This document shows, in pieces, positions 6,382 to 55,574 of a DNA stretch of 62,442 nt. The DNA is taken from contig NIVC01004056.1 of the NCBI GenBank assembly GCA_002269645.1, positions 1-62,442 on the forward strand, given 5' to 3'. Below the pieces are notes generated by a model. It was not told the DNA's origin. It made no database searches and worked only from the letters and a program-made list of their open reading frames with translations. Origin of the DNA: Macrostomum lignano (Eukaryota). The first letter of the stretch is position 1; the number at the start of each line of letters is the position of its first letter. Made by a program: the position numbers and the translations under genes.

Positions 6382-6506
6382 TCAGATATCTGGCTGCTGG
6401 CTGTCGCACTGCGCCTTGCAGCGCAGCAGACACTGCGCCAGGAACTCGATCGGGTCCACGGGCCTCGCGTTCGCTACCTCGGCCATTGAGCTGGCCAGTG
6501 CTGGCT
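6382..6506 (-). CDS. NWD-type NACHT gene, exon 6 (terminal): Dpy-30 motif core
   Basis: Strong acceptor ccccccattttctcattccAG (6508-6507), phase 1. It encodes (K)PALASSMAEVANARPVDPIEFLAQCLLRCKAQCDSQQPDI* with TGA at 6384-6382. An ATTAAA lies on the minus strand at 6281-6276. Confidence 0.75.
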
Positions 6507-6559
6507 CTGGAATGAGAAAATGGGGGGAATTTTGTAGTGCTCAACATGTTCCGTAGGGT

Positions 6560-6760
6560 AAAGACTCTCAAGACACCGCTCTCTGAGGAGGCTGGAAACA
6601 CCGCTTTCTGAGCAGGACTCTGAAGACAATACTCTGGGAGAAGGACCCAGAAGACACCACTGTGGGAAGGACTTTGGGGACACCAATGTGTGAAGGACCC
6701 TGAAGACACCACTCTCTGGGAAGGAATGAAGGAATCTGAAGACACAATACTGAGGATTCT
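6560..6760. repeat. Degenerate minisatellite of about 30 bp in NACHT-gene intron 5
   Basis: Recurring GAAGACAC(C/A)..CTCTGGGAAGGA-like units. Confidence 0.6.
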
Positions 6761-6915
6761 GAAAATCCCACTGGGATGAAATATTAAAATAAAATCAGTA
6801 ATTTCCCTCAGCGAAGAATCCCAACTTCAATTAAGCCTTCCGGAATACATCTAGGGCAATAACGCTTATTAACTACCACGTATTAAGTTGTAATCAACAA
6901 CCCCTTGAATCTCAC

Positions 6916-7198
6916 TCAGCATGTCCAGGTATTCCGGTCTTGGACCAGGTGCTTTCGCCGGCGAACCTACACTCGAGTCTGCATTCGCCGTTGCATCGAT
7001 CGCCTTCATCGAGTGCATCTGGGCAGCTCCATCAGCAGCAACTAGCGGTTGCGGGTCGTGAAGCTCAAACAGCATGATTGGTGCGTTATGCGTCAGCACC
7101 AGCAGGTCCCGACCATCTTCCCCAACCAAGCAGAGTCCGAAAGGATCCGACTCAAACAGGTAGTTTGCAACGCGGCGTCCATCACTGATTACATAGAC
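6916..7198 (-). CDS. NWD-type NACHT gene, exon 5
   Basis: Acceptor ttctgcactccAG (7200-7199). It encodes VYVISDGRRVANYLFESDPFGLCLVGEDGRDLLVL...PRPEYLDML. Phase-1 donor A|GTGAGA at 6915. If unspliced, the frame stops at 6871-6869. Confidence 0.75.
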
Positions 7199-7313
7199 CT
7201 GGAGTGCAGAAATTAAACGCAGTCATTGAGAAAAGGCATCTTTAGATCGGATTCTTATAAGCGTTGGCATTAAAAGATTTGCCATTCCCAATAACAATCG
7301 TTGCTAATCTTAC

Positions 7314-10300
7314 CTGCAAGCCTCGAGGTGGAACAATTGCGAACATGTCCGAATTGTTCATGGATTCGTCATCGAATACGGCGAACTCCACCTCGTAGGC
7401 GGGAAAGTACACCTGGCCAACAAGCAGGCTGCAGTCTGGCGTGGCCTGCAATCTAACAAAGTACAAGTCCTCGTCCTGACTGAGACAGCGGATCACTTCG
7501 CCTTTCATGTAGTCCACAATCTGAAGCTTGTAGTTGACCAGGTGCTGGTTGTCGTGGAGGAAGGCCACTGCGGGTCCCATGTCGAACACTTTGCCGATGG
7601 AGTGCTGGAACTGGATCTCGCTGGTCGGAGCTCCTTTCTCCACGTCGCTGTAGTCGAGGCGCACAACCGCGCCGAGCCAAATCGGAGGAACTCCGACGCC
7701 GACGCGAATCTCCTCGGACGCTTTGAGGTGTTGGCTGAAGGCCAGGTTGAGCGTGCACTTCTCTGGCAGGAACTGAATGTCGACGAGGTCATTGCGATTA
7801 TTCAATCGCTTTTTTAGAAACTTTTCTTCCTTCGCTTTCTTAGCCGCTTCCGTCAGCTCTTCTTCATCGCCTTTGGTTTCGGTTGAATTCTCTTCCTTGG
7901 TCTCCTGGTTTTCGGAAGGCTCCTTCGTCTCTTCCTTCTTGCCTTTCTTCATCTTTTGCTTTTTACTGCCTTTCTTCTTAGATGTCGCCTTTAAGCCGCC
8001 ATAAATGACCTCTGAAAACTGCTCGATAAAATCTTGTGAGAGCCTGTCTGAGCTATCATCGCCGCTGTCTAGATGATTATTTTTCGTAAACTTGAATACC
8101 ACGCTCTCCATTGTGGGGAGATGGACAAGTGAGACAAAACTCTCTTTGAAGCTGTACTGAACGTGGCACTTAAGTAAAATTAAGCACTGTCGAGATTCAT
8201 CAAGAAATCCTAATTCTAGAGAATTTGATCCATGCGAAATCGGAGTCTGGGCGAAGATGTTGTTTTTTGAGATACACAGTGAAGCCTGTAGTTCCATTTC
8301 TTTGTCACTTGATTCGTTTTCTGCGTCAACGTGAAATTTGAACTCGACCCCTCCAACTGATTTGGACTTACGACTTCGAAGGAGTTCCTCCTTTGATGTG
8401 CTACCAAAAACTTTTTCTACCAGCTGGTTGCTGATCACTGAGATGCCAACAGAAAAAGGAGCTTTCGGATCGCGGCGAAGCTCGATAATGGGAGGCTGAT
8501 CCGACAGCCTAAGCGTCTCTAACTGATCGTCTTCTTTCGAGTCGCGTGAAGAGGACTTCTTGACCACCAGTGTCCGAGTGTTCAATGAAATCAGAGCCTC
8601 ATTAGTGCGAATGTCCACCGTGTGACAATCGGTGAGTCCTGTCGCATTCTTACACGGCTTGACCTGAGTATACATGGGAAGCAGTGCATCCTCTTCGCTG
8701 TGGTGACTAAGCTTGTCGGTGAAGTGTTTCAAATTGTACACCTTAGTCATGATGAACATTCGCTCGTCAGAGTCGCCAGCCGACTCGTCAGGAAAATGAC
8801 AGATAGTGAAGAAGTCCGTGCCTTTCGGCTGGCCACAAAGAAAGCTTTCGGCCGTTCCTAGGGAGATTCCTTCCAAAAGTTCGCCAGTTTGCACGGACCA
8901 CACAAGTAGAAGCACCTTAGAACCAGACGTAACTAGCAATCGCTCGTCTTCGGTAAATTTAGCCTGCGTACCGTCACCAAAACTTGATGCAGCCTTTTTG
9001 AACTTGTCTTGCTCAGGTGATATTGTCATCCCAACAGCGCGCTTTTCGTCACAGTCGTACAGCAGACCACGAAGAACGCTTGTTTGACCGTATAATCTGG
9101 ACTTTCTCTTCAGAAGGAAAGTCATTCGACGACGACTTGGGCTTACGAAATTTTGACTGTACTTTATATCGAAGCTTTCCTGAAGGTCCACAATACAAAT
9201 GGGCTTGAGGCTTTCAGAGATGGAGAATGTAACGAAAAAAGTATTGAGTTGTTTCGCCCTCCCTTCTTCAGCTGAGTTTGTTGCGTTTACAATAGCAACG
9301 ATGTTTCCCTCATGATCAATGAGACAGGAGCTAGCAGAAACTTCCTCAGCTTGCTGAAGTAACTCGATGGCCTTCGATTTCAAGTCGGCTTCACTTGCTG
9401 CCGGACTTTCGTCCGCTTCTGTCTTCTCACAATTTTCATCCGGTGTCTTTTCTTCTTTCTTATTGTCAGGTTGCTTCAGTTGTGAGTACCGCCACATGGA
9501 CTCAAGTTCCGCTTTGTCAGCTGACTTGAAGATGTCAGGCAAAGAACCTCGAACGATCTCTTTCGTGTTTAAGTTCATGAACACGAGCAATGTTGAGTGG
9601 TTGCTGCCTGCCTCGATCCCAAAGCACAGCAAGTTGTTTTTGCTATCGAGGTTTTGGGTGCCGATTCTCGACGTTCCGCTTGTATTTTCTTCATAAAGCG
9701 CAACAAACTTCTTCTCTCCGAGTGACAGCAGTCTAAGAGTGCTTGTTCCCGTTGAGTCACTCTTTCCCTTGCAACAAAGCACATAGTCCTTTGTCACATA
9801 TTCTACGTCATCAGATGAGACACTCCATGATGGGTCCAGAGTCATCAGTTTCGTCACCCTGCCGTTTATGAAGTCGACTCGAACGAGATCTTGCGACTTC
9901 TGCGCCTCTTCCTCTCCAGACATCATCTTCTTCATCATCCCGTCTACGTCCAGCTTCTCCATGATGCTGTCTGGAATCTCTCCAGCGTTGAGCGATTCCA
10001 TCATGTCTCGCAGCTCTTGCGGCACATCCTTGTTGCACGCTTCGTATTCTTCGATCTCCTCTTGGATCTTCTTCCGACCCATGTTAAGGACAAGCGCTTG
10101 TCTGTCGTCCTCGGTGACACCGGCATTCTTCGAGCGCATCGATAGCACGTGCATTACGCAGTCGTCTGGGATGTATCCAGTCGACATGTACTTCATGCTG
10201 AGGAACAGGTTGTAGTCGGAGCTGAACCGTTTGATCTCATTTCCCTCGATGTCGTACCAGGTGACTTCGTTGTTGATGAGTGAGAAGGACACCAGCTGAC

Positions 10301-10838
10301 CGTTGGGCATGACCAGTCCCATTCCGAGTCCGAGATCAAAGCTGGAGTAGAGAACTCCAGACCCGGAGTCGAAGCACTGCACCTTCGGGATGAGGCAGCA
10401 GTTGCTGAGAGCCTGTTTCGACTGGCGACACTGGTTGAGCAGCAGCTTCACTCGAGGACAGTCCTTCTCGTACATGATGAGCCGACCGATGAGATCAACG
10501 CTCAGATTGACAGGGTCGTATACGAGACTCTGAGCGGAGAGTCGGATTGCATTGTACACGAGCTCGGCCTCTTTGATGTACTCGACACCGAGCTTCTGCG
10601 GGAGGTCGAGGTCTCTCAGCAGCAGGTAGCGAGACGTGCTCTTCAGCTTGTTGAACATGAAGTCGTAGTCAAACACAATGTAGTCGTAGAACTCGTTCAC
10701 TCGACCGGACTTGATGAGGTGCCACGGCAGCTCGTTCAGCTTTCGCAGGTTGTACTGAGCAGTGCCGTCCTCATCTTTGCGGAGCACGAATGGCTGCTCG
10801 GGAACGGCTCGGTCCTCCATTGAGAACTCCGGAAGATT
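7314..10838 (-). CDS. NWD-type NACHT gene, exon 4 (1175 codons; helical region, then a divergent beta-rich C-terminal region)
   Basis: Acceptor ctcactccAG (10840-10839) and donor CAG|GTAAGA (7313). It starts NLPEFSMEDRAVPEQPF...YNLRKLNELPWHL, a motif typical of NWD proteins. Confidence 0.85.
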
Positions 10839-10915
10839 CTGGAGTGAGAACGAATGCATAAACGGCTCAGTAAGTCGGTTCAGAGAACAGATCAATTTCA
10901 GTGCTCATCACTTAC

Positions 10916-11293
10916 GAGCTTCTTGCGCAGATAGGCTGGGTACACGAACTTCTTTCTCCTGCCGCTCCACAGACCCAAGAAGTAGTCTGCCATGATGGAG
11001 TGAATGTCCCGTCTGGTCTTTTCGTCCGACAAGAAGTACTCCTGAGCCACCTCGATGAACTGTCGGTGGTACCAGAACACTACCCGGATGTTGTCCGCCT
11101 CTCTCTCGACCAGGTAAGAGCCAATGTCGTGACGCAGTCGAGCCCAGCAGATCGGCGGGATGCGGATGAAGGGCGGCAGGTGATGCTGGAACACGTCAAT
11201 GAGGACGGCGTCATCCAGACTGAGCAGATCCTCCAGCTCCGACTCTGACAGTCCGTTTCTCGATGCAGTGATGAATGCCAGGGCGTGAGAGGT
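10916..11293 (-). CDS. NWD-type NACHT gene, exon 3 (winged-helix region)
   Basis: Acceptor ttttccAG (11295-11294) and donor GTAAGT (10915). It encodes [28 protein letters not shown]...[13 protein letters not shown]...WYHRQF, typical of NWD1/NWD2. Confidence 0.88.
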
Positions 11294-11380
11294 CTGGAAA
11301 AACAATTCACTGTAGATAAATGGATAGTTGTGGAATATTCTCACTAGCCTGGGCTAATGTAACTAACACGAAGTACTTAC

Positions 11381-12802
11381 AAAAAGCCTGCCGTGCTTCA
11401 ACTCGAGTTTCTCGAACAGCTGAAAGATTGCCTGACGAACGGTGTAGCGCAGAGACGGCTCATCTACCTGTTGGTAAGAGCGCCATCTCAGAACCTCGTG
11501 GTACAGCAGGTGAACATAGATTGGCAGTGAGCACTTGGAGAATGCATGCTCAACCAGAGCCCATTGCTGCTCGTTCAGAGTGCGACCTTGTTCGCTGAGC
11601 AGAGCCGACAAAATGCTGGTGCATAGACTGGTCTCCAGTGGCGTCACCTCCACGTAGAAGTCTGGGTTAGGCAGCTTCCCTTTGAATGTCTTCAGCAGGT
11701 CGAACATGTTGGGCAGAGTGGACACAACCATCTTCACGTTGGCAGGCAATGGCGTCCGCACCCAAGTCAGATGGTACGCACCGTCAGAGCTGTCCAACTG
11801 ATCAACACTGTCAAGGAACACCAAGATTCTCCTGAACTGGCCCATGCGTTCGAGCATGGAGTAGAAGGTATTCAAGATCTCCTTGAAGTCGTCGAGTGAC
11901 TCGCACTTTTCCTGGTCGTCCTCGTTGCCGAACACAGCGAGCTGACGGCACAGGTACTTGAGTGTCTGTCGAATGCTCGACGTACCGGGACTGGTACCGA
12001 GGAATCGCAACAGCACGATAGCATCTTTGGCATCGGACTCTGGCAGCCAGCTTCGCACCAGACTGGCGGCCTTGCCAAGCAGAGAGGTCTTGCCGCTGCC
12101 CGAGTCGCCGTACACCACCAGAGGCTCAGTTGTGTTGCTCGCTTGCACATAAGCTTTCACCTTGTCGATGATCTCTTGCCGACCCTGGAACTTCTTCACG
12201 TAGTTGACGCATGCAGTCGAGTGCTGCAGCACCTCCGAGTAGAGGTCGTCCGATCGGAGCCGCATGCTCTCCCGCACGGATTCGGCCACGAGGCGCTTCA
12301 CATTATCGCAGTAGTCGCTGCCAAACTTTTCCAGATAGTCTTTGTGGCTACTCATGCCCACACCCTCAGCGTCATTGGTCCATTTTAGTGAGTAAGTGAA
12401 GGAATTGGATCCCACCATTCGAGTCAGAACGTGTCTGTTCAACTCCTTGACCATCGCGTTCACAGCTTCATCAAGAACCTTTACTGCCTCGCCATCTTCG
12501 TTCACAGAGTCGGTCAGGTCGATGAACTTGAACATCTTTCCTCGAGAGAAGTCGCGCTGAGACTCCAGATCAGAGAACTCTCTCACGAATGCGAGAGCCT
12601 GAGCCAACTTTTGCGGAGGTTTTGACAATATTCCGCTGATCACCTCCATCTCGGTGACAGAGGCCGTGAACTTCTTCATTGTCGCGTGCGAGATCAAAGT
12701 CTTTTGAAGACACAACTCGGCACCTCTCTTCATGAGTCCGATGATGGAGTCTTGGACAGCTTCCCACCGCTGTCGAGCAGCTTTCAAGAGCTCCTTGTCC
12801 GC
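11381..12802 (-). CDS. NWD-type NACHT gene, exon 2 (NACHT/STAND NTPase)
   Basis: Walker A VYGDSGSGKTSL, Walker B LVFLDSVDQL, plus LRFLGTSPGTS and WVRTPLPANVKMVVST. Acceptor ttccAG (12804-12803) and donor GTAAGT (11380). Confidence 0.9.
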
Positions 12803-12899
12803 CTGGAACAATGAATTACGAGATTAGAGGTTATTAAATTTATCCTGTTGCAAACTCTGAAAAACAAGCGCTGCAATAATCGCAAAAAAGCACACTTAC

Positions 12900-13424
12900 C
12901 GCCTCTGCTAGAGTTGCAATCGGTCTCAGGACACAGATTGGTGGCTTGTTGTTCTCGTCGATCGTGTACCACTCGTGTAGACACGAGACGTCGCGTCCGT
13001 CCTCCTTCAACGCTTCCACGATGTTGTTGAACACGTCGACCTCGACAAGGGCTGCAGGCGGCTGGTTGCCATAGCGCTGACCCAGCAGACAGATGAAGTA
13101 GGGGCCGGCAGACATGATGAGCGAGTTGTCGATCTCTTGGTAGCACATGTACGGACCCTGGTGGTCGAGCTGTACCTCGTCACCGACTCCCCATCGCATG
13201 TCGATGGTTTGAAACTCGAGTCCGAAGGAGTCACGGCAGAACTTTTTCAGCCTTGGATTGACGTGCTGCATGAGGTAGTTGCGCTCCGTTCCCATGTCCG
13301 AGAAGGTGGACGACAGGAAGATGCGCACGACGCGGCTGTTCATGATCGGCAGGTCGTCCAGACGGCCTTTCATGACTTTTAGGTAGACTGCTAATGGGTC
13401 AAACTCTGTGAGCGCTCCTATCAT
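12900..13424 (-). CDS. NWD-like: NWD-type NACHT gene, first coding exon (DUF4062-like N-terminal domain); whole protein about 2085 aa
   Basis: VRIFLSSTFSDMGTERNYL...LEFQTIDMRWGV...YFICLLGQRYG is the DUF4062-type start of NWD/TEP1-like proteins. Donor GTAAGT at 12899. The start codon is inferred (ATG at 13424); an upstream acceptor at 13552-13551 could mark a UTR, trans-splice site or additional coding exon. Confidence 0.82.
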
Positions 13425-14786
13425 TTCTGAGTGTTTGGTTAGCCGTTTGTGCAGCGCTGGCCGCTTGGCTGACCGCGCTGGCCGCGAGTGGCGGCTGTGA
13501 GCTGAGCCGATCCGTTCGGCCCCTCCCACATCGGAAGGCTCTCGTGAATTCTGCAACAGGTTTAGTAGCTGTTATTGATTTTTAGACAGATTTTTAGACA
13601 TTTTTAACAGAGGAATTAAAGAATTTTTAAATAGTTTGCAAATCTACGATGAAAATAAAGGTTCAAATGGTTTTCCAATTTTATAAGTCTAAAATATGTA
13701 TTTTTACTAGGTTCATGAGGGGATTGCACAGTTCGAATGTTTGTTATTTGCATTAGCTATTAAAATTCTGTTTATCAGATACCTACTTAGATCCTATAAG
13801 GAAATTTTAGTTATCCATAGTAATTATCTAGATTAAGTAGATTTATTATGGATGAGCTACTTTTTTATCTTTCTCGCAGCTCCAAGGAAGACATTAAAAA
13901 ATTTATGCATTGTATGTACTTAGTTAAATTGAAATTTGTCAAATAATATAATTTTTGTATTACCTACTTATTATATCTAAATTTTATTTTTCAAGGCAAA
14001 AATCTATGGAATTGAAAAGGAAAAATTTGATTTTTAAAATATTTTCTCTTAATTTTTAAAAACAAAATATTGGTGTTGGAATCTTTTGTTATAAACACGA
14101 GAATTTTAGTAAATGCTTTGAAACAAAAGTAAATTTTAGATAATCGGGTCCCTTGTGTATTCGACTTTAGAAGCCAATAAAAAAGTTTCTGAGCACAATT
14201 TTTTGTGACAGTATAATTAAAATTAGTCAAAGTTAATTCTGGTTCTTTGAATTATGTCAATTGTTTTGTTGTGCATAGATAAACTGTTGCAGTAAAAAAT
14301 ATGAGTTAAATATGATTTAAATCGATTAAAGGCAAACTTTCAATATACTTAAATTGATGCTTTTGTAAGAAGTAACAAAATTCTTTTTCTTAAGAAATAA
14401 GAAGAATTAGGAATTGAGAAAAACTGCAATCTATAAATATGATAAGACTTCGTTGACCTCTTACGACTTTACTTGGATTTCAAAATAGTAAACCTTCATG
14501 GTTACTTGTTGTCATTAGTTTTACAAGAGGTCTAAAAGATCCTTGTAAAAAAAGTGTAATATTTTTCTGCGTTGCACTGTTATTGAACTTTTTTACCGTG
14601 GTTTCGTCATTATCAAACTAGTATTTTTGTTATAACTAAAACTAACGTTAATGCGTATTGAAAAACCCTTTTCCACAGATCATAATGCTTTAATCAATAC
14701 AATACTGCTGGACGGACAATACAATGCAATACTGGACGGACTTGTAGAACTCACAACATTAATAAAAAACTCAAATGATCAATATT

Positions 14787-27004: not shown

Positions 27005-28593
27005 GGAAGGAATTTTTTGGTCTATCCTGAGCATTGCATGCTTCCTAAACTAATTCAGCTCATCGCACTGGCCTGGCCGGACCCACCAAGATTTCCCCAG
27101 CAGCAAACAGAAGCAGGTGCCAGCCTGTGCGGTGGCTGGTGCGGGACTTGAGACTATTGTTGTTGGAGCGGGCAAACCTCTTCTTGGTCAATAAGTTTCT
27201 CCTCTTTCCGCGCTCTGCCCCCCCCCCCAGCCACGGCCGCTGCCCTCCCAAGTCTAAAATTGAGTCCCCCTTCTTCCTTATTTTCCATAATGCTATAAAA
27301 TACAGCCGTCTCCAGCGCTCGCTCAGGTGCAGCACAGAGAAGGCAGCAAAAGTTTTTTAAGTCGGCGATTTAATAACGCGCTCTAATCAAGCGTTCGTCC
27401 CCCTCCCAGTCCCAGTAGCGCGGCAAGCTCAGCAGCTCCTCGGAGCAGAAATTCAATATCGGCCTCTTAAGATAGAGAGACGCTGAGAAGAAGAGAGAAG
27501 ATCGGACAACGGATGGAAGAAGATTGATAAAAAAGTTCTTATTGTAGCTATATATAATAAAACCGGTGTAATATCCTTCGGCTGAGCGGCTCTGCTAGGG
27601 GTTGAGGGGGGGGGGGATTTTTCCTCAAGATAACAAAAACGCGCAGACCTAATTCTGCGCTTCGCTGCCGACAAGCGGCCTACCTAATATTTCATCATGA
27701 GCTGCCGGCCCTTCCATAACGGCGGGGAGGGGAGACACTTTTGAGGGAGAAAAGCGAGCTGGGGCCCGTCCGGTCCGGACTTTGCTGAGGCTTTTCATGA
27801 GTAGAGCCGGCCGTGTAGAGCGGGGACCGGGGCGGAACCCGGAGTCACCGCCGTGAACTTTTAGCTTGAAGGAATTCAATAGAAAGAAATGGAAGTTTTA
27901 GTTGACTTTATAAGCGGGGATGCAAATAATAGCTGAAGCCTGAAAATAGCAGGATCCTGGCCATAGACTATCGCGGCCAGTACTGGTGTCCCAGAAAAGC
28001 GCACCATTTTAACTGACTACTGGGGGTGGGCGTTAATCATAAATGCTACAAGTTACTACACCTTCTTACCTTTTATTTTGAGCAAACTCCCTTGTTATTC
28101 CCACAAGCGGGACACCAATTCAAACACTGATGCAGACGTGAAGGTGTTTGAGTAGAGACGTAAAGAACCTTTTTAAGTCAATCAGAGCCAAGCCTATGGG
28201 CTGTTGACCCTCTGCGTTTTGTGGGTTTTCGTTTTCTTCAGCCTCCTCTTCATCCTCTGTCCACTGTCCTCCAGAACTGCTCAAGCTTGTCGAGAATCAA
28301 TCGCTATTCACTTCTCATGAAGCGATGTCTATGAAACAGCTTTTTTAGTGCATTAGTTGCATTGACCAGCTTAGTTGTCGAGCTAGGCATGTAACTAACA
28401 CCCTGTGGAACTGCTGGGCTCGTGTACGCATGATATAAAATTGGCGAGCCGTTGTCAAGCAGGATCAATTCGTTCATCGCCTTATCTGACATTATTTTGC
28501 ATTTTTTTCTCAAAAAATTTGGAACACAAAAACGTACTTTTAAATATTTATTTTGCAGTTCGCCTACTAAAGAAGTCGCAACAGTGTCCGGAT

Positions 28594-28626
28594 ATGGGCG
28601 CAGCTGACACCCCAGACCGGAACTGA
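28594..28626 (+). promoter_or_regulatory. Upstream ORF ([10 protein letters not shown]) in the 5'UTR of the D2-like receptor
   Basis: It lies between an acceptor (ttttgcAG, 28557-28558) and the main ATG at 28650, out of frame with the CDS, and stops 23 nt before it. Confidence 0.4.
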
Positions 28627-28649
28627 ATCCGCCTCATCTCTTAGCGAAC

Positions 28650-29054
28650 ATGACCGCCTTGGACAGGCAAAGCTTCCTGCAAGCTCTGCAGTCGAACTCA
28701 CCAGAGCAGGCTCAGCAGTCTGCCTCATCACTGCAGCCTCAGCTGGGCAGAGGCCGCAATGTCAGCAGCTTCGGCAACCTGACCGGCCTCGAGAGCCTGA
28801 CCAACTTCAGCCAGCAGCTTGTCAATGCCACTCTGCTGACCAATTCAACGACCAATGAACCGCTTGAAAGGCGGTACTGGGTGCTCGGCCTGCTGCTGTT
28901 CCCCTGCTTCACCATATTCGGCAACATCCTGGTGGTGATGGCGGTGTACAGGGAACGTAGTCTGCAGTCCGTCACCAACTACTTCATTGTGTCGCTGGCG
29001 TTTGCCGACATCCTTGTTGGAGCCATCGTGATGCCGATTTCTGTCTATGTTGAG
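28650..29054 (+). CDS. DRD2-like: D2-like dopamine receptor, coding exon 1 (N-terminus, TM1-TM2); whole CDS 1596 nt, 531 aa
   Basis: [60 protein letters not shown], then donor GTGCGA in phase 0. Confidence 0.92.
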
Positions 29055-29081
29055 GTGCGATGTTTATCGATAAATGAAAAA

Positions 29082-29714
<633 letters not shown>

Positions 29715-30487
29715 CGGCAACATCAATAGGAAAGAATTCAAATAGCTGACACTTGAATGGCACCCTCGCACGCGGAGGTCAAGCAGGAGACACTCGCAGT
29801 GCTCCGAACCATTGCAGTCAAATAGATTAAATTCTCGCTCGTAGAAAAGCGGGAGTTTAAGGCCAATTTGAATCCTTGAGAGAAAGGAGACCGGGAGAGT
29901 GGGCGGGACGCCACCCATTCAAATGAGCGGCAGGCAGCAGTTGGGATGCAAAGCAGCGTGAGGGAAGAGGCCTCTGGGATTTTCTTGCTCAGATGAAAAT
30001 TGCTTTCTTTATTCTAGCAGGATGCTCACCCGATCCTGCCACTCTCCCTGCCATGTCTCCCAGCATGCGCTCCGCAGTCCAGTCCCTCTGTGTCCCTCCG
30101 TTCACAAGCCTAGAGAAACAATGGCCGCTGCGCGCTGGGCAAACAGGACTGGAAGGGCCATGCGGGAGCAGAGATTTTGCTGTTCTGCTGCTGTGTTTTC
30201 TGGGCCTCCCATCCATGCCAGCCCGGGGGCTTTTAGCCGGCGGTCGGTCGATTGATATTGATACGGCGGGCTCGAGGCCTGGCTATGAGGCAGAGCTCCC
30301 CCACCCGGAGCCGCCCCCGGGGTTAAAGCACTTTTGCACCAACAAATCTGATTACATGCGGTTAGATACGCATTCTGCAGCCTTTACTCATGTCTGTGTC
30401 CCTCTCTACCAGACCTCCCTCCCGCTATCGTCCCCTGCCCAGCGATTTCGTCTCCGGAATCTGCGTGTCCGCAAGCTGGTGGGGGTG

Positions 30488-31005
30488 GCAGAGATGGGGG
30501 AGATGCAGAGATGCGGGAGATGCAGAGATGGGGGAGATGCAGAGATGGGAGAGATGCAGAGATGGGGGAGATGCAGAGATGGGGGAGATGCAGAGATGCG
30601 GGAGATGCAGAGATGGGGGACATGCAGAGATGGGGGAGATGCAGAGATGGGGGAGATGCAGAGATGGGGGAGATGCAGAGATGGGGGAGATACAGAGATG
30701 GGGGACATGCAGAGATGGGGGAGATGCAGAGATGGGGGACATGCAGAGATGGGGGAGATGCAGAGATGGGGGAGATGCAGAGATGGGGGACATGCAGAGA
30801 TGGGGGAGATGCAGAGATGGGGGAGATGCAGAGATGGGGGACATGCAGAGATGGGGGAGATGCAGAGATGGGGGACATGCAGAGATGGGGGAGATGCAGA
30901 GATGGGGGAGATGCAGAGATGGGGGAGATGCAGAGATGGGGGACATGCAGAGATGGGGGAGATGCAGAGATGGGGGACATGCAGAGATTGGGGAGATGGG
31001 GAGAT
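30488..31005. repeat. 17-bp minisatellite GCAGAGATGGGGGA(G/C)AT, about 30 copies
   Basis: Directly visible. It explains the ORFs at 29993-31078. Confidence 0.95.
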
Positions 31006-32793
31006 GAGGATATGTAGTCATTTTGCAGTCAGGGAGGTGGCAAGTATTCATGCCCATTCCGCTGGCCCCTGAGCACACACAGGCTCACGGATGCGTACGC
31101 ACGGGTGTACAGCGGCCCCGACTCTCCTATCGTTAAGCATTGTTAAGCCTCGATTGCGATGAAGGATAGGTGGGCTAGAGAGTAGATAAATTGCCCATAA
31201 GTTGAAGCGGAGGCAGATTGGGTCGCGTCTTAAGAGGGATGAGACAGGCCAGTCTCTGTGACATTGTGGCGACTTCATTCGGGTGCCGTCCTCCAGCCTC
31301 CAAGACTCCGCGCTGATGCGCGCAGCAGCTTCCGGTCTGGTCGGCTGCAGAACCAGAGCTTCATCTCTCCCCCCAGACTCCCGCCCTCATCCATTCCGCG
31401 CCAGGGTTTATTAAAACGCACCCTTGCACAAGCCCGTCAAGAGCCTGAAGTTCTACCTTGCAGCTCCACCTGCAAGCTCAGCTGCCGACTTCCGGGTGAA
31501 GCACAATATATAATGATGAAGATGGCTATTCAGCTGCTGTACGGCAGGCTATTATTCAAGCAGTGGGCCTGTCAGAGGAATAATGAGAACGAAGCGGACG
31601 AGCGATAAAGCCAGTAATGAATCTTTATTTTTTATTTATTCTCAAGCAAGTGAAACTCTGGAGTCGCCTGGACTGCGTGGGGGAATTTCTGGGATCGTGC
31701 GGGCAGAACTGGAAGGGGGCAGAGGAGGCTGGGGAGGGAGTCCGGCGACACGGAACTGGTTAAATGACGTCGTTAGATGTCTTTGGGGGGTCCGGGGGGG
31801 GGGTGGGGCGGGGACAAGAAGCGGCGAGAAAAAGAGAAAACGAGGCCCTGCCCAATGCCCGAGATATCCCGCCCCCGGGGGCCGCTCAAATGGGATTTGT
31901 CCTCCCCCATGGTCGAGAAGTGGGAGATCTCGATGCTATTAGCCGTTGGGCCGGGGCGCGCACTGCCGAGTGAGTTTACATACATACACAGTTTTCCCAA
32001 ACTGGCGGCGGATTACAGCGATTTTTTCATCAGAGGAGTCCGCAGTCAGTACCTCGCAGGGAAATAAGGAAATCCATTAGGCCAGAGCTGCCTGCACTCT
32101 GGGTCCCCCGGCTTCCTGCGGGAGCTGCTCGCGGGATCCTTCCACTTGGGAGCTGTACGATGATTACTCAAATTCCCGCACTCTGCCGCTGATCTGCTGT
32201 TAATCCCCGCTAAGCCCTTCGGCTCAGACCTGGGGTCAAGTATCCAGCTGTGCTGCGGTGGAACTCTCCATGACGTCACTGGGTAGCGGACGGTCGATCG
32301 TGCTGCCTTTCTGGGCACTGCCGCAAATCAAGGTGTAGAGTCCATTCCGCTGTAGGCAGCGCATAGGGGAGGTGACCCCCGAGGCTTGAAGATCGATTGA
32401 AGATGAAGAAGGAAGAGACTCCGCAAAATTGGGGCCCCAGGTGGCCACCGACCCAGGCCAGCTCGTTGCCAAGAAGTATCTGGGCAAGATAGGCGAGGAA
32501 GACAGAATCCTCTCGATGATTTCCGAACAGAAATACAACAGATTTTGAAAAATTTGATTTTGCTTTAAAGTTGAATATGTTTTTTTTATAAATGACACAA
32601 GTTTTATTGGAACAGGGGCATGCAAGTTCAATAAAGTTTTGAGAAATGATAATTGGCGTGTGGTAAAAATCGTTAAAAAGATGGAAACTGATGTTATTTA
32701 TAGAAGCAAGTTTTTTTTAACAAAATATCGCGCGACTCAGGGAAATCCAGTCAGGAGTAAAAAAATATGATGACAATGTAGGCTTGGTAAACT

Positions 32794-33135
32794 ATCTATG
32801 TCCGCAAATTGTTTCCAAGAAACCGGAGTCAGTCTATGTCCGCAAATTGTTTCCTAGAAACCGGAGTATATCTATGTCCGCAAATTGTTTCCTAGAAACC
32901 GGAGTATATCTATGTCCGCAAATTGTTTCCTAGAAACCGGAGTATATCTATGTCCGCAAATTGTTTCCTAGAAACCGGAGTATATCTATGTCCGCAAATT
33001 GTTTCCTAGAAACCGGAGTATATCTATGTCCGCAAATTGTTTCCTAGAAACTGGAATATATATAAGTCCGCAGATTGTTTCCTAGAAGCTGGAGTATATC
33101 TAAGTCCGCAAATTGTTTCTTAGAAACCGGAGTCA
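32794..33135. repeat. 38-bp minisatellite (TATCTATGTCCGCAAATTGTTTCCTAGAAACCGGAGTA), about 9 copies
   Basis: The period is 38 (32823 to 32861). Confidence 0.93.
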
Positions 33136-35979: not shown

Positions 35980-36048
35980 GTGAGAGACAGAATACACAAG
36001 TGATAGCTTCGCGAGGCTAAGGTAGTAAAACTACTGCGGAAAAAGTAC

Positions 36049-36597
36049 AGTTGCTATGGTGATGAAACAGTTGCTATGGTGATGGATCGGTTGCTATGGT
36101 GATGGATCAGTTGCTATGGTGATGGATCAGTTGCTATGTGGATGGAACACTTGATATGATGGATCAGTTGCTATAGTGCTATAACAGTTGCTATGTGGAT
36201 GGAACATTTGCTATGGTGATGGAACAGTTGCTATGGTGATGGATCAGTTGCCATGGTGATAAAACAGTTGCTATGGTGATGGATCAGTTGTTATGATGAT
36301 GGAACAGTTGCTATGGAAATGGAACAGTTGCTATAGTGATGGAACAGTTGCTATGGTGATAAAACAGTTGCTATGGTGATGGATCAGTTGTTATGGAGAT
36401 GGAACAGTTGCTATGGGGATGGAACAATTACTATGGTAATGAAACAGTTGCCATGGTGATGGATCAGTTGCTACGAAGAAGGTTCAGTTGCTATGGTGAA
36501 GGTTCAGTTGCTATGGAGAAGGTTCAGTTGCTACGAAGAATGTTCAGTTGCTATGGCGAAGGTTCAGTTGCTATGGAGAAGGTTTAGTTGCTATAGA
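36049..36597. repeat. 20-bp degenerate minisatellite (GGTGATGGATCAGTTGCTAT)
   Basis: Directly visible; it starts about 70 nt after the exon 2 donor. Confidence 0.9.
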
Positions 36598-36969
36598 AGA
36601 GTTACAAAAAGGGAACAATTCGCGGAACGCATTTTTACGATAAAATAAACAGCTCAGATAAAAATTGCTCATCCACGGTGTCCCTACCGAGCTCTTTCAC
36701 CTCTGGCCCGTGCCTGAAGCCAGTCCGAGTGCCCGGCAATGAGATTCTGCATACTTTTATCTGATTGTATCCGGGCTGAGGAAATTGCAATCTATCGAAT
36801 ATTTGATCGGATTGGTTCGCCCCCCTCCCGGCAGTCAAGGTAGAACGGCGTGTAAAAATAAACTCCGGAATGAAATCAGCGCCCCAAACTCTGTGGCTTA
36901 GGAAATTGCATTAGCTATGCAAAATCTGCCTGCCCCGCATTCATTAGCTTAATTGCAGCGGTGTCTTTT

Positions 36970-38395
36970 GCGTGTCTGTGTCTGCCTGTGTCTGTGTCTG
37001 CCTGTGTCTGTGTCTGCCTGTGTCTGTGTCTGCCTGTGTCTGTGTCTGCCTGTGTCTGTGTCTGCCTGTGTCTGTGTCTGTGTCTGTCTCTGTCTGTGCC
37101 TGTGTCTGCCTGTGTCTGTGTCTGACTGTGCCTGTGTCTGCCTGTGTCTGTGTCTGCCTGTGTCTGTGTCTGCCTGTGTCTGTGTCTGCCTGTGTCTGCC
37201 TGTGTCTGTGTCTGCCTGTGTCTGTGTCTGCCTGTGTCTGTGTCTGCCTGTGTCTGTGTCTGCCTGTGTCTGTGTCTGTGTCTGCCTGTGTATGTGTCTG
37301 TGTCTGTCTCTGTCTGCGTCTGTGTCTGCCTGTGTCTGTGTCTGTCTGCGTCTGTGTCTGCCTGTGTCTGTGTCTGTCTGCGTCTGTGTCTGCCTGTGTC
37401 TGTGTCTGTCTCTGTCTCTGTCTGTGTCTGTGTCTGTCTGCGTCTGTGTCTGTGTCTGTCTCTGTCTGTGTCTGTCTCTGCCTGTGTCTGTGTCTGTGTC
37501 TGTCTCTGTCTGTGTCTGTGTCTGTGCTGTGTCTGTCTCTGTCTGTGTCTGTCTCTGTCTCTGTCTGTGTCTGTGTCTGCCTGTGTCTGTGTCTGTGTCT
37601 GCCTGTGTCTGTGTCTGTCTCTGTCTGTGTCTGTGTCTGTGTCTGTGTCTGTCTCTGTCTGTGTCTGTCTGTGTCTGTGTCTGTGTCTGTGTCTGTCTCT
37701 GTCTGTGTCTGTGTCTGCCTGTGTCTGTGTCTGTCTCTGCCTGTGTCTGTGTCTGTCTCGATGCCTGTGTCTGCCTGTGTCTGTGTCTGTCTCTGTCTGT
37801 GTCTGTCTCTGTCTGTGTCTGTGTCTGTGTCTGCCTGTGTCTGTGTCTGTGTCTGCCTGTGTCTGTGTCTGTCTCTGTCTCTGTCTGTGTCTGTGTCTGT
37901 GTCTGTCTCTGTCTGTGTCTGTGTCTGCCTGTGTCTGTGTCTGTCTATGTCTATGTCTGTGTCTGTGTCTGCCTGTGTCTGTGTCTGTCTCTGTCTGTGT
38001 CTGTCTCTGTCTGTGTCTGTCTCTGTCTGTGTCTGTCTGTGTCTGTGTCTGTGTCTGTCTCTGTCTGTGTCTGTGTCTGTCTGTGTCTGTCTGTGTCTGT
38101 GTCTGTGTCTGTCTCTGTCTGTGTCTGTGTCTGTGTCTGTCTCTGTCTCTGTCTGTGTCTGTGTCTGCCTGTGTCTGTGTCTGTGTCTGCCTGTGTCTGT
38201 GTCTGTCTCTGTCTGTCTCGGTGTCTGTGTCTGTCTCGGTGTCTGTGTCTGTCTCGGTGTCTGTGTCTGTCTCAGTGTCTGTGTTTGTCTCGGTGTCTGT
38301 GTCTGTCTCGGTGTCTGTGTCTGTCTCGGTGTCTGTGTCTGTCTCGGTGTCTGTGTCTGTCTCGGTGTCTGTGTCTGTCTTGGTGTTTGTTACTG
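36970..38395. repeat. Complex (TGTCTG/TGTGTC/TGCC) simple-repeat tract, about 1.4 kb
   Basis: Directly visible. It explains four ORFs of over 400 aa at 36915-38439. Confidence 0.97.
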
Positions 38396-38956
38396 CCTGT
38401 GCAGAAACCAAGATGAAATATTGTAGCCCATTGAAGTGATTACGCTGGCTTCAAAAGTTTTGCGTACATTTTAAGTAAATCAGGAAAGGTCGTTTCCCTT
38501 CTTTGCCAAAACTAAGGACAGTGGGAACTCCTGTTGCGCTCTGAAACTTCTATAAGAAATATTGCTCACTTCTTGGCCGTCAGCCCTGATCGCAGGCTGT
38601 CACAGCTGTCTCAGTGACCCGCTGCTCTGGTACCGAGTTGGGAAGGTAGGGATGGGATATCTTCAATGCTCATCATGATTTACAAGCATTGCTGAAACAT
38701 CAATGTCCTGCCTGCCCATAGCAACAAATCTCGCTCCGCCATAGGTAAATCTGATGAAGCGGGCAGTTAATCAAGATAATTGCAGAGCAAGCAGGTTTGA
38801 ACTGCTCTCCACGCTACTCGTACAACTATAGGCTTTGCCTGCGCTGATTGGGCATCCATATGCGTCTAGCTGCACTGCTTGACATTCAACTGGCCAAACT
38901 GTACCAGACATACTAAAATTAATGCTAAACTAATCACCCAGGTAATGCAATATCCG

Positions 38957-47947: not shown

Positions 47948-48338
47948 ATGACTCAGTGGTCGACCGGTCTGACTGACAGGGAGGTCTCCGACTTCATGTC
48001 AACGCCTGCGGCAGGCGGCAGTAGCGGAGGATTCACCTGTGCTCCGCCGCCGTTACTGACTCACCCTCTGGCGGGCCTCTGCGGCCTCGCCGATATTCCG
48101 TTAGACGCTGACGAAACCGACGAGCTCGAGCAGCAAGTCGACGGGGACGAAAACGACGAGGTTGTCGGAGCTCAGGCTGCCGGCGCCACTCCGGACGAAG
48201 GGGCTGCAGCGGCCACGGCTGGCTTGGCGCAGGACATCGCTTGCGACATCATCGAGATCCGGGCCGCTCTGGCTGTCGGCGGCGGGGGCATCGGCAGAGT
48301 CGGTTGCTATGGAAACAGAGACAAGGCGGAGAATAATG
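47948..48338 (+). CDS. APBA-like: X11/Mint/LIN-10 gene, putative first coding exon (acidic, disordered)
   Basis: GC-rich ORF from ATG 47948, with an in-frame stop upstream at 47921. The phase-1 donor G|GTTAGT at 48339 is compatible with the next exon. Assignment rests on splice phase and colinearity, not on homology. Confidence 0.55.
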
Positions 48339-48360
48339 GTTAGTACGAGCTAAAAAAATT

Positions 48361-49445
48361 AGGACTTGAGGGTGTAGAGAGCTGGGACTTGAGGGTACAG
48401 AGAGCTGGGACTTGAGGGTGTAGAGAGCTGGGACTTGAGGGTACAGAGAGCTGGGACTTGAGGGTACAGAGAGCTGGGACTTGAGGGTGTAGAGAGCTGG
48501 GACTTGAGGGTACAGAGAGCTGGGACTTGAGGGTGTAGAGAGCTGGGACTTGGGGTGTAGAGAGCTGGGACTTGAGGGTGTAGAGAGCTGGGACTTGAGG
48601 GTACAGAGAGCTGGGACTTGAGGGTACAGAGAGCTGGGACTTGAGGGTACAGAGAGCTGGGACTTGAGGGTGTAGAGAGCTGGGACTTGAGGGTGTAGAG
48701 AGCTGGAAGTTGAGGTTGTAAAGAGCTGGAAGTTGAGGTTGTAGAGAGCTGGGGCTTGAGGGTATACAGAGCTGGGACTTGAGGGTGTAGAGAGCTGGGA
48801 CTTGAGGGTATACAGAGCTGGGACTTGAGGGTGTAGAGAGCTGGGGCTTGAGGGTGTAGAGAGCTGGGACTTGAGGGTATACAGAGCTGGGACTTGAGGG
48901 TGTAGAGAGCTGGGACTTGAGGGTATACAGAGCTGGGACTTGAGGGTGTAGAGAGCTGGGACTTGAGGGTACAGAGAGCTGGGACTTGAGGGTGTAGAGA
49001 GCTGGGACTTGGGGTGTAGAGAGCTGGGACTTGAGGGTGTAGAGAGCTGGGACTTGAGGGTACAGAGAGCTGGGACTTGAGGGTGTAGAGAGCTGGGACT
49101 TGGGGTGTAGAGAGCTGGGACTTGAGGGTGTAGAGAGCTGGGACTTGAGGGTATACAGAGCTGGGACTTGAGGGTGTAGAGAGCTGGGGCTTGAGGGTGT
49201 AGAGAGCTGGGACTTGAGGGTGTAGAAAACTGGAAGTTGAGGTTGTAAAGAGCTGGAAGTTGAGGTTGTAGAGAGCTGGGGCTTGAGGGTGTAGAGAGCT
49301 GGGACTTGAGGGTGTAGAGAGCTGGGACTTGAGGGTGTAGAAAACTGGAAGTTGAGGTTGTAAAGAGCTGGAAGTTGAGGTTGTAGAGAGCTGGGGCTTG
49401 AGGGTGTAGAGAGCTGGGACTTGAGGGTGTAGAGATCTGGGACTT
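48361..49445. repeat. 23-bp minisatellite GGGACTTGAGGGTGTAGAGAGCT, about 47 copies
   Basis: The period is 23 (48362 to 48385). It starts about 23 nt after the donor. Confidence 0.96.
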
Positions 49446-50194
49446 AAAGGTAAACTCCGGACAGTCAAGGCCTATAAGATCGCAGTGACTTCGCGGCCAC
49501 TAGAATATCCCAGGCGGCTAAAAGTACCAGTTTTGATTGCCACAACGCATCAGATTTTAACAGGCCGAATTCCATCAGGTGTTGTCAATAATTTCGTCTT
49601 GTTTTATGATTTCTCTCTCTGAAACCTGTCCGTCCATCGTATCCAAGGCTGGAGATCGGTAACTTATGGCTGGCTAGAATCGAAGCGACGCTGATTAAGC
49701 TGCAACTGCGGGGCCCCGCCCGCTCAGCACCAGTCTGACTGCGACTCTAATCAGCATTGGAAACACTGTAGACCCCCATGTTCGCTCTGTAAACATTCCC
49801 CTAGGCCCCTAATCCCATAGGCCCCGCAAGTCCCTAGGAGATCTGCGCCTCTCTCCTAGTAGCAGCTGCTTCGACTTCGTATGTTTACCTTCGTCCTAGC
49901 CTTCATCTGCTGCTAGAATTGGTGTGGGGGGAGTCTGTGTGCGTGGGGCCTGGCCCAGTCCATCTGTTCGAATTTCTTCTCCGACCAGCTTGTTGCGCAG
50001 CTCGGAGGCTCTCGAAGGCTTGGATGGTTGAATAAAGCGGTAGAAGGTTTTTTAGTGTCGATGTTGCGTGGAGTGAAGCTTGTTGCGGCTCTGTACACAA
50101 TGTGGGGAATTTGTCCAGGGATGATTGGATTGATTTTTGGCATGTGGGAACAGTTTGCGCGACAGTTCTTGATTGTCGAATTTCTGTCAGTTTC

Positions 50195-53505: not shown

Positions 53506-54814
53506 AAAGAATAGAAAATGTGTCAGTGGACAAGCTTCAATGGACAGCTAATATGCATATTGCCGATAAGCTGTAGTCAAAGACAAGAGCATCAACGGAC
53601 AAGTTCAGTAGGATAACATGTCAGCCAAACGGCTGATAAAATAACCGACAAGCGCACGGAGAAAGCTGACAAAAGCGTAGACAACTGCCTAGAACCGATG
53701 ACTTGGGCGATTAGAAACAAGGTTTTAAAAAGAATTTCACTTCTAGCCCGCGCGGCCAGCCGATCAGAAGCCAGACCGGAGAGAGGGAAAAGCACAAGGT
53801 CGAGAGATTTCCTGTCGAATCGGGAGTTTATCTTTCGTCCAGATCGCCCCGCCTTGCCAGACCGGCTGTCTGTCTGTCAATTGTCTCCCAGGCTGCCTCC
53901 AGCCTCCCAGCAGGGGGTTGGGAGTGGGGGGAGCGCGAGCGTTTAGAGGGGAATAAAACTCGGGCAAGATATCCCCCGCATAGTCCACTCAGCCGTCGCG
54001 TGCTGGAAATTCCGTGTCCGTTAAGTTTTTGCTGCTGCCCTAAGCTATCCGCTGCTCCTTCCGAATTTTTGTTTCACTCAGCTCCACTGCCGCGGGGAAG
54101 CCCGCTCTCAGCTGCTGCTCCCGGGGCATCGACTCGCCTCTCTCCGCTGTTATTCTCTTCCTTTTTGCTTTGCTAGCCCCAGCCTCGACAGCTCCGGGCC
54201 TAATTATGTTAATTATGCCGCTTACTGCCCGCCTCGGCTCCCAGTGCAAAGCGGATTACCCGACAGGCAGTCCGCTCCAAGCCAGCCCTGCACTGCTCTG
54301 CCCCTGAGCAATGGGACCAACACCAACACCAACCCCGTTCAAAAAAATCGCGCCACCCCCTATTCACAGCCGCTCTTCTCGGCATCATTCGAATCCGAAT
54401 GGGAAGCTGGAAATCCCTGTGTCTTCATCCGGCCGAGCCCCCCCTGCCCGATCCGCCTGCCTTAGATAGGCGTCCGACTCAATGACTCCGCGCTCTTTCC
54501 TCCCCACGTCCCCTCTTCCCCGCTCTTATCCCCGCTCTTACTCATCCGCCATGCTTGGCTCAGCCTCCCACTGACCTCGCTTATCCAAAACGCCAGCAAT
54601 TTATCTTACTCTGTCTGGGCGGGAAGGCCAAGCTTACAAATAAAAATAAACCGAATACTAAAGGAAGCACTTATATTTGTTGCCATTGAGTGCTTTGCTG
54701 TTTTGCAGCTTGGCACCCGCCATCAGTTTGCTGCCCAGCCATCAAGAGATGCTGAATTCCCTGTGTGCTAAACTGCGGCAGGACCACCGGCTCCGCTCAC
54801 TCCGCTCCTCCACC

Positions 54815-55190
54815 CACCCACTCCACTACCCACCCCACTCCCCCACCCACCCCATTCCTCCACCCACCCCACTCCTCCACGCACCCCATTCCTCCACGCA
54901 CCCCATTCCTCCACGCACCCCATTCCTCCACGCACCCCATTCCTCCACCCACCCCACTCCTCCACGCACCCCATTCCTCCACCCACCTCACTCCTCCACA
55001 CACTCCACTCCTACACCAACCGCACTCCTACACCAACCGCACTCCTACACCAACCGCACTCCTACACTAACCTCACTCCTACACCCACCACACTCCTCTA
55101 GCCGCCTCACTCCTACACCCATCTCACTCCTCCACCAACCTCACTCGATCCTACATCAAACTCACTCCTCCACCCACCTCACCCACATTA
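54815..55190. repeat. C-rich degenerate array of about 18 bp (CCCCATTCCTCCACGCAC)
   Basis: Directly visible. Confidence 0.85.
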
Positions 55191-55205
55191 ACCCCAATTG
55201 CGCAG

Positions 55206-55517
55206 ATGGCGGCTCCTCCAGACAGCCCGCATCAGCATCGACCGCTGACTGCTATGACAGCGACGGCGACACGGACGGCCTGTTGAAGAAGCCCTACTGT
55301 CGGGAGGTACGGCTGCACATCCCCGAGCTGCGGCGCCAGCAGACGCGCAGCGGCTCCGCCGGGTCGGCGATGACGTCATCCACCTCCTCTTCCACTTCCG
55401 CTGCCGGCAGTGAGCCCCGGATCCTCCAGTCGGCGAATACGGCGCAAGGTGGTGCGCAGCAGCAGCCGAAGAAGCAGCAGGAGTCCAATGATCAAGCCGA
55501 TGGCAGCAGCGGAGAAG
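55206..55517 (+). CDS. APBA-like: X11/Mint gene, internal exon preceding the PTB domain
   Basis: Acceptor ttgcgcAG, 312 nt in phase 1-1 (DGGSSRQP...GLLKKPYCREVRLHIPELRRQ...GSSGE), and donor G|GTAGGA. It joins in frame to VLIEG. Confidence 0.7.
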
Positions 55518-55574
55518 GTAGGAGCTGCCTGCCTGCTGCATGCTACTGTCTCTTTCTCCTTGTCTGGTGTCCTG

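Follow-up and report, generated by a model that had tools for sequence, protein, structure and literature searches.

We analysed a contig of the flatworm Macrostomum lignano (assembly Mlig_3_7, GCA_002269645.1) over 62,442 nt; this whole stretch is called the window below. On its minus strand, positions 13424-6382 hold one copy of an M. lignano gene for an NWD-type STAND NTPase, whose product ends in a Dpy-30 docking and dimerisation (D/D) domain split by the last intron. When the gene was rebuilt from the window sequence, the spliced model comprised six exons and 2085 amino acids (aa) with no internal stop (Table 1). Introns 1-5 all have GT..CCAG borders and measure 97, 87, 77, 115 and 409 nt in order. 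Intron 5 is the longest (the other four span 77-115 nt) because it carries a tandem repeat of about four copies of a 26-28-nt unit at 6610-6725, with the plus-strand consensus AGGACCCTGAAGACACCACTGTGGGA. At its donor, CTG A/GTGAGA, the GT occupies 6915-6914, and at its acceptor, TTTTCTCATTCCAG/AG, the AG occupies 6508-6507. Joining 6916 to 6506 creates a split AAG codon (Lys) in phase 1 and a C-terminus that closes with PRPEYLDMLKPALASSMAEVANARPVDPIEFLAQCLLRCKAQCDSQQPDI; the full C-terminal peptide of the spliced model reads PGPRPEYLDMLKPALASSMAEVANARPVDPIEFLAQCLLRCKAQCDSQQPDI, followed by the stop codon TGA. An earlier note on this DNA, made from the letters alone, had proposed this gene model with its length of 2085 aa and the 6916/6506 splice, all of which the rebuilt model bears out. 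Its tail peptide was given with the correct end coordinate, 6382, but broke off after CD, so that the last six residues (SQQPDI) were dropped.

The identity of the tail was established with a Pfam scan of the spliced protein, in which scores were judged against the family gathering cut-offs. Dpy-30 (PF05186) was assigned to aa 2043-2073 with 30.7 bits against a cut-off of 22. The tail alone reached 33.9 bits (E = 2.5e-8) and exon 6 alone 33.5 bits (E = 3.3e-8), so the part encoded in exon 5 adds almost nothing (~0.4 bits) to the hidden Markov model (HMM) score. In a phmmer search against the PDB, the tail (PRPEYLDM.LKPAL...KAQCDS) aligned with human DPY30 (3g36) at E = 8.7e-6. This alignment spans the splice site, where a gap of one residue is opened, and contains 21 identities in 45 positions (47%), four of which, YLD included, fall within the eight residues contributed by exon 5. 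The next matches were DYDC2 (E = 0.004) and DYDC1 (0.006), both taken from axoneme structures, followed by a nucleoside diphosphate kinase (NDK; 0.34) and AK7 (0.66); expressed in bits, DPY30 scored 29 versus 14-21 for DYDC and AK7. Helix 1 starts in exon 5 with EYLDML (window 6934-6917), after which exon 6 encodes KPALASSMAEVANA and RPVDPIEFLAQCLLRCKAQ (window 6504-6409) and finally CDSQQPDI. The signature of the tail is EYLDMLKPALASSMAEVANA-RPVDP-IEFLAQCLLRCKAQ, corresponding to helix 1, an RPxDP loop and helix 2. The earlier note had recognised the domain by comparison with a human DPY30 sequence, which matches PDB chain 4riq_A; the Pfam score of the isolated tail and DPY30 as its top PDB match confirm that identification.

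Table 1. Coordinates of the NWD-type gene in the window
Feature	Position	Strand	Content
Exon 1	12900..13424	-	aa 1-175; first in-frame ATG at 13424; N-terminal part of the DUF4062/TIR-like (NIR) domain
Exon 2	11381..12802	-	aa 176-649; remainder of the expanded DUF4062 domain, NACHT NTPase, start of the NWD1-type winged helix
Exon 3	10916..11293	-	aa 650-775; bulk of the NWD1-like winged helix-turn-helix (Pfam HTH_NWD1)
Exon 4	7314..10838	-	aa 776-1950; helical spacer, then long diverged beta-rich region
Exon 5	6916..7198	-	aa 1951-2044 and base 1 of codon 2045; last WD-like strands, variable linker, start of Dpy-30 helix 1
Intron 5	6507..6915	-	phase 1, 409 nt, GTGAGA...TTCCAG
Exon 6	6382..6506	-	aa 2045-2085 and stop codon at 6384-6382; rest of the Dpy-30 helix-loop-helix
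Putative spliced-leader acceptor AG	13551..13552	-	TTGCAG/AATTCACG; inferred 5' end of the mRNA

The last exon had been called hidden in the earlier note, which does not hold. PAA48787.1 (BOX15_Mlig021732g1), a GenBank coding sequence (CDS) annotated on this same contig, has the identical C-terminal peptide together with PF05186, and UniProt A0A1I8HEY0 shows the identical end peptide with a precomputed PF05186 assignment. Two near-identical genomic copies are represented by PAA55802.1, which is colinear with our model at all five junctions, and by PAA61123.1. The 6916/6506 junction is used by the transcriptome-derived CDSs of all three genomic copies. Since the Mlig_3_7 GenBank annotation was derived only from RNA sequencing (StringTie/TACO), a de novo transcriptome and TransDecoder (Wudarski et al. 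2017, PMC5730564), the junction has transcript support by way of that annotation. PAA48787.1 is imperfect elsewhere: it starts at Met199, misses the residues NLP at the exon 3/4 junction (window 10830-10838) and skips a K/E-rich stretch of 43 aa (aa 1724-1766, window 7866-7994) that lacks GT..AG borders and is skipped in PAA61123.1 as well. The skip, the missing NLP and the Met199 start probably stem from an artefact in assembling the transcripts or from differences among the copies of the gene (polymorphism).

Other ways of splicing the 3' end were considered and rejected. The GT that follows 6916 is the sole GT near the donor. A downstream acceptor, CCAG/CACTGG, would remove two residues, and an intermediate AG breaks the frame. 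A UniProt model (P0003) employs a frame-shifting splice by which the domain is lost; it was rejected, as the introns of a paralogue and of Schistosoma agree with 6916/6506. At the other end of the gene, the transcript-derived PAA55802.1 starts exactly at codon AAT (13550-13548), and the frame is open from there onward to the first ATG. It is because of this open frame between 13550 and 13424 that the public models are flagged as 5'-partial. The sequence at this start suggests that the mRNA is probably trans-spliced to a spliced leader at the acceptor listed in Table 1.

The same architecture and tail recur in at least five paralogue groups of M. lignano (Mlig013297, A0A1I8JC45, Mlig032501, Mlig012608 and the window gene), whose tails are 36-62% identical to one another; paralogue tails scored 43.9 and 50.8 bits with Dpy-30. 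Orthologues with a recognisable tail were found in Schistosoma (S. haematobium, S. bovis, S. margrebowiei, S. spindalis, S. turkestanicum and S. guineensis), two species of Paragonimus, Calicophoron daubneyi, Fasciolopsis buski and the monogenean Cichlidogyrus casuarinus, so that tail-bearing members outside Macrostomum span four trematode families and one monogenean. Dpy-30 was the sole Pfam family common to all 11 of the 11 flatworm tails tested, which come from complete members of three classes. When these 11 tails were aligned with human DPY30, R and P were invariant, P, D, I and A reached at least 90% conservation, and the helix 2 motif PIEFLA..LL was the best-conserved stretch. The RPxDPI motif is present in all complete flatworm members, whereas it is missing from each of the ~100 NWD1/2 homologues examined outside the flatworms. 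When 1.84 billion representatives were searched with a profile, each match below E = 1e-30 whose source organism was retrieved came from a flatworm; one of the 13, P0136, lacks a recorded organism but closely resembles the Schistocephalus protein. Most other matches were small canonical Dpy-30 proteins that align only at positions 256-305, the last 50 of the profile. Mean pairwise identity was higher in the tail (0.39) than in the linker before it (0.13) or in the C-terminal half as a whole (0.18). By this measure of sequence identity the tail is an island of conservation.

The intron that interrupts the domain is shared too. In the window gene it reads CTG A/GT...AG/AG (Leu, then the split Lys codon), in a paralogue 43% identical to it (L001) ATC C/GTGAGT...CAG/GT (Ile, split Arg codon), and in S. 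haematobium (L002, OX103965.1), where the intron is 1.5 kb long, TTA A/GTAAGT...CAG/CT (Leu, split Thr codon). That is, all three genes have a phase-1 intron at the same codon. It is this comparative evidence from intron and tail, and not the HMM score, that validates the splice. The earlier argument that a motif split across the intron supports the junction is accordingly weak at the HMM level, where the exon-5 part brings only 0.4 bits, and is strong in its comparative form, in which position and phase of the intron are conserved. Junction, phase and tail are found again both in Schistosoma and in the paralogue of 43% identity, and the observation as a whole goes far beyond what chance would give. 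The shared tail and the shared position and phase of the intron imply that the fusion predates the split between Macrostomorpha and Neodermata; on this comparative evidence, it was already present in the ancestor of a flatworm clade to which Macrostomorpha, Trematoda and Monogenea belong.

Every trematode NWD match listed in a full-length protein search, those of schistosomes included, falls within the Dpy-30-tailed clade. The orthologue models of S. mansoni (Smp_145280), S. japonicum, Heterobilharzia, Schistocephalus and Protopolystoma stop before or within the tail. From YFEESGL onward, the S. mansoni model reads through the conserved intron. Three of these public models, those for the orthologues of S. 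mansoni, S. japonicum and Heterobilharzia (P0011, P0014 and P0020), are cut short at or before the Dpy-30 exon and could be corrected.

The earlier note knew of no protein of this kind. This needs to be narrowed, as a flatworm clade shares the architecture and the Pfam assignment was already public; what stands is that a single clade is concerned and that we found no paper describing the architecture. Our literature search returned no description of NACHT combined with Dpy-30, co-mentions of 'NACHT' and 'Dpy30' being unrelated by title and abstract. The query 'NACHT and WD repeat' with Schistosoma retrieved only a human-host study of cervical gene expression and nothing on this protein. While gene model and Pfam architecture are thus already public, the clade-wide conservation of tail and intron appears to be new.

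In the N-terminal half, the Pfam scan identified DUF4062 (PF13271) at aa 34-123 (window 13325-13056; 34.6 bits, cut-off 24.7), AAA_16 at aa 379-515 (43.8 bits, cut-off 32.6), NACHT (PF05729) at aa 402-578 (window 12124-11594; 36.3 bits, cut-off 26.7) and, following NACHT, HTH_NWD1 (PF25469) at aa 632-740 (41.6 bits, cut-off 27). Both nucleotide-binding motifs are intact, Walker A as GDSGSGKT (aa 407-414, window 12109-12086) and Walker B as ILVFLDSVD (aa 501-509). The TIR-like domain of TEP1 (PDB 11gz_A) aligns with aa 31-124 at E = 5e-10, which, together with the Pfam matches, substantiates the DUF4062-NACHT architecture proposed in the earlier note.

DUF4062 has been described as a TIR-like NADase fold whose catalytic Glu is E1008 in TEP1 (bioRxiv 10.64898/2026.05.01.722283; 10.64898/2026.09.04.749371). 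In the window protein, the motif SVTEMEV at aa 223-229 (window 12661-12641) is identical to SVTEMEV at residues 110-116 of chain 11gz_A. If the last of the 220 residues of this chain is TEP1 residue 1113, as in the constructs of both preprints and as our numbering assumes, E1008 would be chain residue 115 and would correspond to E228 of our model. This second Glu of the motif is invariant across flatworm members; the first is replaced by His in some paralogues. In vitro, TEP1 was active as an NADase, whereas human NWD1, NWD2 and NPHP3 were inactive under the tested conditions (bioRxiv 10.64898/2026.05.01.722283; 10.64898/2026.09.04.749371).

The first part of exon 4 encodes a helical spacer, with homology to NWD2 as far as ~aa 979. 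It is followed by about 1000 aa of diverged beta-rich sequence with WD-like motifs (e.g. LLLVWSVQTGELL) and K/E-rich low-complexity inserts. Alignment with the WD repeats of NWD2 by hhalign gave a probability of 67% (E = 5e-5) for ~aa 1880-2005, and in BLASTP aa 1947-2032 matched the final WD repeats of Lingula NWD2 at E = 1e-4. When a low-confidence AlphaFold 2 (AF2) model of the last 313 aa (mean predicted local distance difference test score (pLDDT) 50) was searched with Foldseek, the top matches were all WD40 propellers, with a template modelling (TM) score of ~0.3. A WD40 propeller in the C-terminal ~1100 aa is plausible but unproven; the propeller named in the earlier note finds weak backing in the hhalign and BLASTP matches, and is set against the lack of a Pfam WD40 match and AF2 models that are of low confidence or uninformative. 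An acidic helical insert specific to Macrostomum, EEIEEYEACNKDVPQELRDMMESLNAGEIPDSIMEKLDVDGMMKK, breaks into the first of the WD-like strands at aa ~1018-1075 (window ~10112-9939) and is the sole part of the AF2 model of exon 4 that reaches a pLDDT of 77-84.

Among known systems, the N-terminal half is closest to NWD1 and NWD2, with which the window protein shares DUF4062, NACHT and the NWD1-type winged helix; over aa 16-979 it is 37-39% identical to NWD2 of molluscs, brachiopods and rotifers, and its last WD-like strands are weakly homologous to the terminal WD repeats of NWD2. In contrast to NWD1 and NWD2, its C-terminal 1100 aa have diverged, with large low-complexity and helical inserts and no Pfam match to a WD40 or NWD propeller, and it carries the Dpy-30 D/D tail that none of ~100 non-flatworm homologues has. 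TEP1 resembles it in the TIR-like domain and in the SVTEMEV motif with E1008, but has TROVE and vWA modules, sits in vaults and lacks a Dpy-30 tail.

Over the D/D region, the tail is most similar to DPY30, sharing YLD...P...RPxxPIEFLA..LL..KAQ. DPY30 is a free-standing protein of ~100 aa, whereas the domain forms the last 45 aa of the 2085-aa STAND NTPase, and we rejected the window protein as a DPY30 orthologue. In AK7, NME5-type NDK and the axonemal DYDC1/2, a catalytic or signalling body is likewise tethered through a terminal Dpy-30 D/D domain; unlike in AK7 and NDK, the body here is a STAND switch rather than a nucleotide kinase. The order of an N-terminal effector, a central NTPase for oligomerisation and a C-terminal repeat sensor is that of APAF-1 and animal NLRs, from which the window protein differs in having DUF4062 and not CARD or PYD as effector. 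We know of no NLR or APAF-1 relative with a docking domain of the RIIa clan.

Elsewhere in the window, open reading frames (ORFs) on the minus strand at 1331-2679 match reverse transcriptase-associated RNase H (55.7 bits) and the integrase core (20.8 bits); by these matches they are remnants of a long terminal repeat (LTR) retrotransposon pol and lie downstream of the NWD gene, some 3.7 kb from its stop codon. A 314-aa ORF on the plus strand at 41705-42649 matches the rhodopsin family of seven-transmembrane receptors (PF00001, 49.8 bits) and is probably an exon of a G-protein-coupled receptor gene. At 28000-33000, 36000-38500, 48000-50000 and 54000-62000, both strands carry long ORFs that overlap, and base composition is strongly skewed (GC skew up to +/-0.36, AT skew up to -0.47), which suggests simple or low-complexity repeats.

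For the function of the protein we favour, with a probability of roughly 60% and by analogy with other Dpy-30 proteins, an NWD-type STAND switch whose tail would dimerise it and dock it on an amphipathic-helix partner. The Dpy-30 domain forms a homodimer that binds helices of ASH2L and AKAP95 (PMC8339350), and an amphipathic helix of RSP3 binds the Dpy-30 proteins of radial spokes (PMC3494852). Given this behaviour, pre-dimerisation or anchoring to an AKAP-like scaffold, as put forward in the earlier note, is a reasonable expectation. The tail would act like those of DPY30, DYDC and AK7, forming an X-type four-helix-bundle homodimer with a groove for an amphipathic helix. In the resting state, the protein would be a tail-to-tail dimer docked to a putative AKAP-like partner, and docking would set the location of the switch and perhaps restrain or prime its assembly. 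The C-terminal beta-rich region may sense a cue, by analogy with APAF-1, TEP1 and NWD proteins (bioRxiv 10.64898/2026.05.01.722283; 10.64898/2026.09.04.749371); nucleotide-dependent oligomerisation of NACHT would then gather the N-terminal TIR-like domains, with NAD+ hydrolysis or scaffolding as the possible output.

Several observations weigh against this reading. At the tail, the Pfam local alignment opens at profile position 9 and omits positions 1-8, and helix 1 falls short of its DPY30 counterpart by one residue. The AF2 monomer of the last 313 aa contains the two helices, at query residues 266-286 and 291-308, with a pLDDT of only ~52-60. Trematode tails scored 12.5 and 17.9 bits, under the Pfam cut-off of 22, with Dpy-30 still their top family; owing to this divergence they are unannotated in the databases. 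Concerning the sensor, the Pfam scan of the spliced protein found no WD40 or propeller family at E <= 1, and AF2 modelling of the exon 4 region (1175 aa, 12-row alignment) gave a mean pLDDT of 33, which is uninformative on a propeller. Concerning the output, the N-terminal domain of the flatworm protein may be non-catalytic, since human NWD1 and NWD2 were inactive as NADases in vitro. Finally, no expression or function data for Mlig021732, Mlig026330, Mlig023669, Mlig007565, Mlig013297, Mlig022598 or Smp_145280 were found in main texts or in the supplements of PMC5816591.

Of the alternatives, the one that survives best keeps the dimer and dispenses with the scaffold. The tail could serve self-association only, through homodimers or through heterodimers among the at least five Macrostomum paralogues, and so regulate NACHT assembly. 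Dimerisation is obligate for Dpy-30 and RIIa domains (PMC8339350), the divergence among the paralogue tails would allow mixed dimers, and TIR-like NADases are activated by oligomerisation (bioRxiv 10.64898/2026.05.01.722283). However, the characterised Dpy-30 domains that we reviewed bind a helix in the dimer groove, as seen with ASH2L, AKAP95 and RSP3, and it is the groove-forming motif of helix 2 that is best conserved in the tail. We therefore consider self-association without a partner rather unlikely.

The ciliary or axonemal sensor that the earlier note named as a possibility, here taken to be anchored through an RSP3-like AKAP, seems quite improbable to us; the innate-immune receptor that it named as the other possibility is likewise speculative. 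After DPY30, the solved structures nearest to the tail are those of the axonemal DYDC2 and DYDC1, then AK7 and NDK, and a weak NPHP3_N match was obtained with Pfam (23 bits, under the cut-off of 24.8). NPHP3, a related STAND protein with a DUF4062-like domain beside NACHT, is ciliary, and the epidermis, protonephridia and sperm of flatworms are ciliated. RSP3 itself binds Dpy-30 domains (PMC3494852). Against this, the tail is nearer to DPY30 proper than to DYDC or AK7, and the gene is not in the germline or neoblast-enriched lists of PMC5816591, which is weak evidence.

That same resemblance would fit mimicry of DPY30, in which the tail might dock on ASH2L/COMPASS or other nuclear DPY30 partners and tie the STAND switch to chromatin. 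DPY30 is the best match over the D/D region, with the 47% identity given above, and binds the helices of ASH2L and AKAP95 (PMC8339350). But the general Pfam scan, which was not a search aimed at such features, reported neither a nuclear signal nor a domain associated with chromatin, and the relatives of the NWD and TEP1 type are machines of the cytoplasm (bioRxiv 10.64898/2026.05.01.722283), which leaves chromatin docking, argued by analogy, very unlikely.

The chance that the tail is an annotation artefact, with exon 6 untranscribed or a separate Dpy-30 gene and the true end a read-through at 6869 (YLDMLSEIQGVVDYNLIRGS), is practically negligible. In its favour, intron 5 is 3.6 to 5 times longer than the other introns and contains a tandem repeat, the exon-5 part gives just ~0.4 bits of Pfam score, and an intron-retaining isoform may exist. 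But the junction stands in the CDSs of three genomic copies, Schistosoma and the 43%-identical paralogue have the same tail and phase-1 intron, all 11 of the 11 complete members, drawn from three flatworm classes, carry the tail, and the read-through peptide has no Pfam match, so that an artefact, a separate DPY30 gene included, is effectively refuted.

What is new here is the comparative picture and not the gene model, as the exon was already part of the transcript-based annotation. STAND/NLR switches usually consist of three modules, an effector, an NTPase and a repeat sensor; a conserved D/D domain of the PKA-RII/DPY30 type would be a fourth, adding anchoring or pre-dimerisation to the switch that we favour. 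Besides free-living Macrostomum, the clade that carries it includes parasites, namely schistosomes, a monogenean and flukes of the liver, lung and rumen. A bolder extension, which we regard as unlikely, is a flatworm-wide STAND receptor with a TIR-like, potentially NAD+-consuming effector and a Dpy-30 dock. An AKAP-like scaffold would then hold a dimeric switch of the NLR type, serving death or signalling, perhaps in sperm, cilia or protonephridia, where the switch would be released or activated. If true, NLRs would be localised and regulated here in a way that is not known to have been described in any phylum. A flatworm-specific NWD clade that combines a catalytic-Glu motif with a docking tail is a tractable system for the function of animal NWD proteins, for which Macrostomum offers transgenesis and RNA interference.

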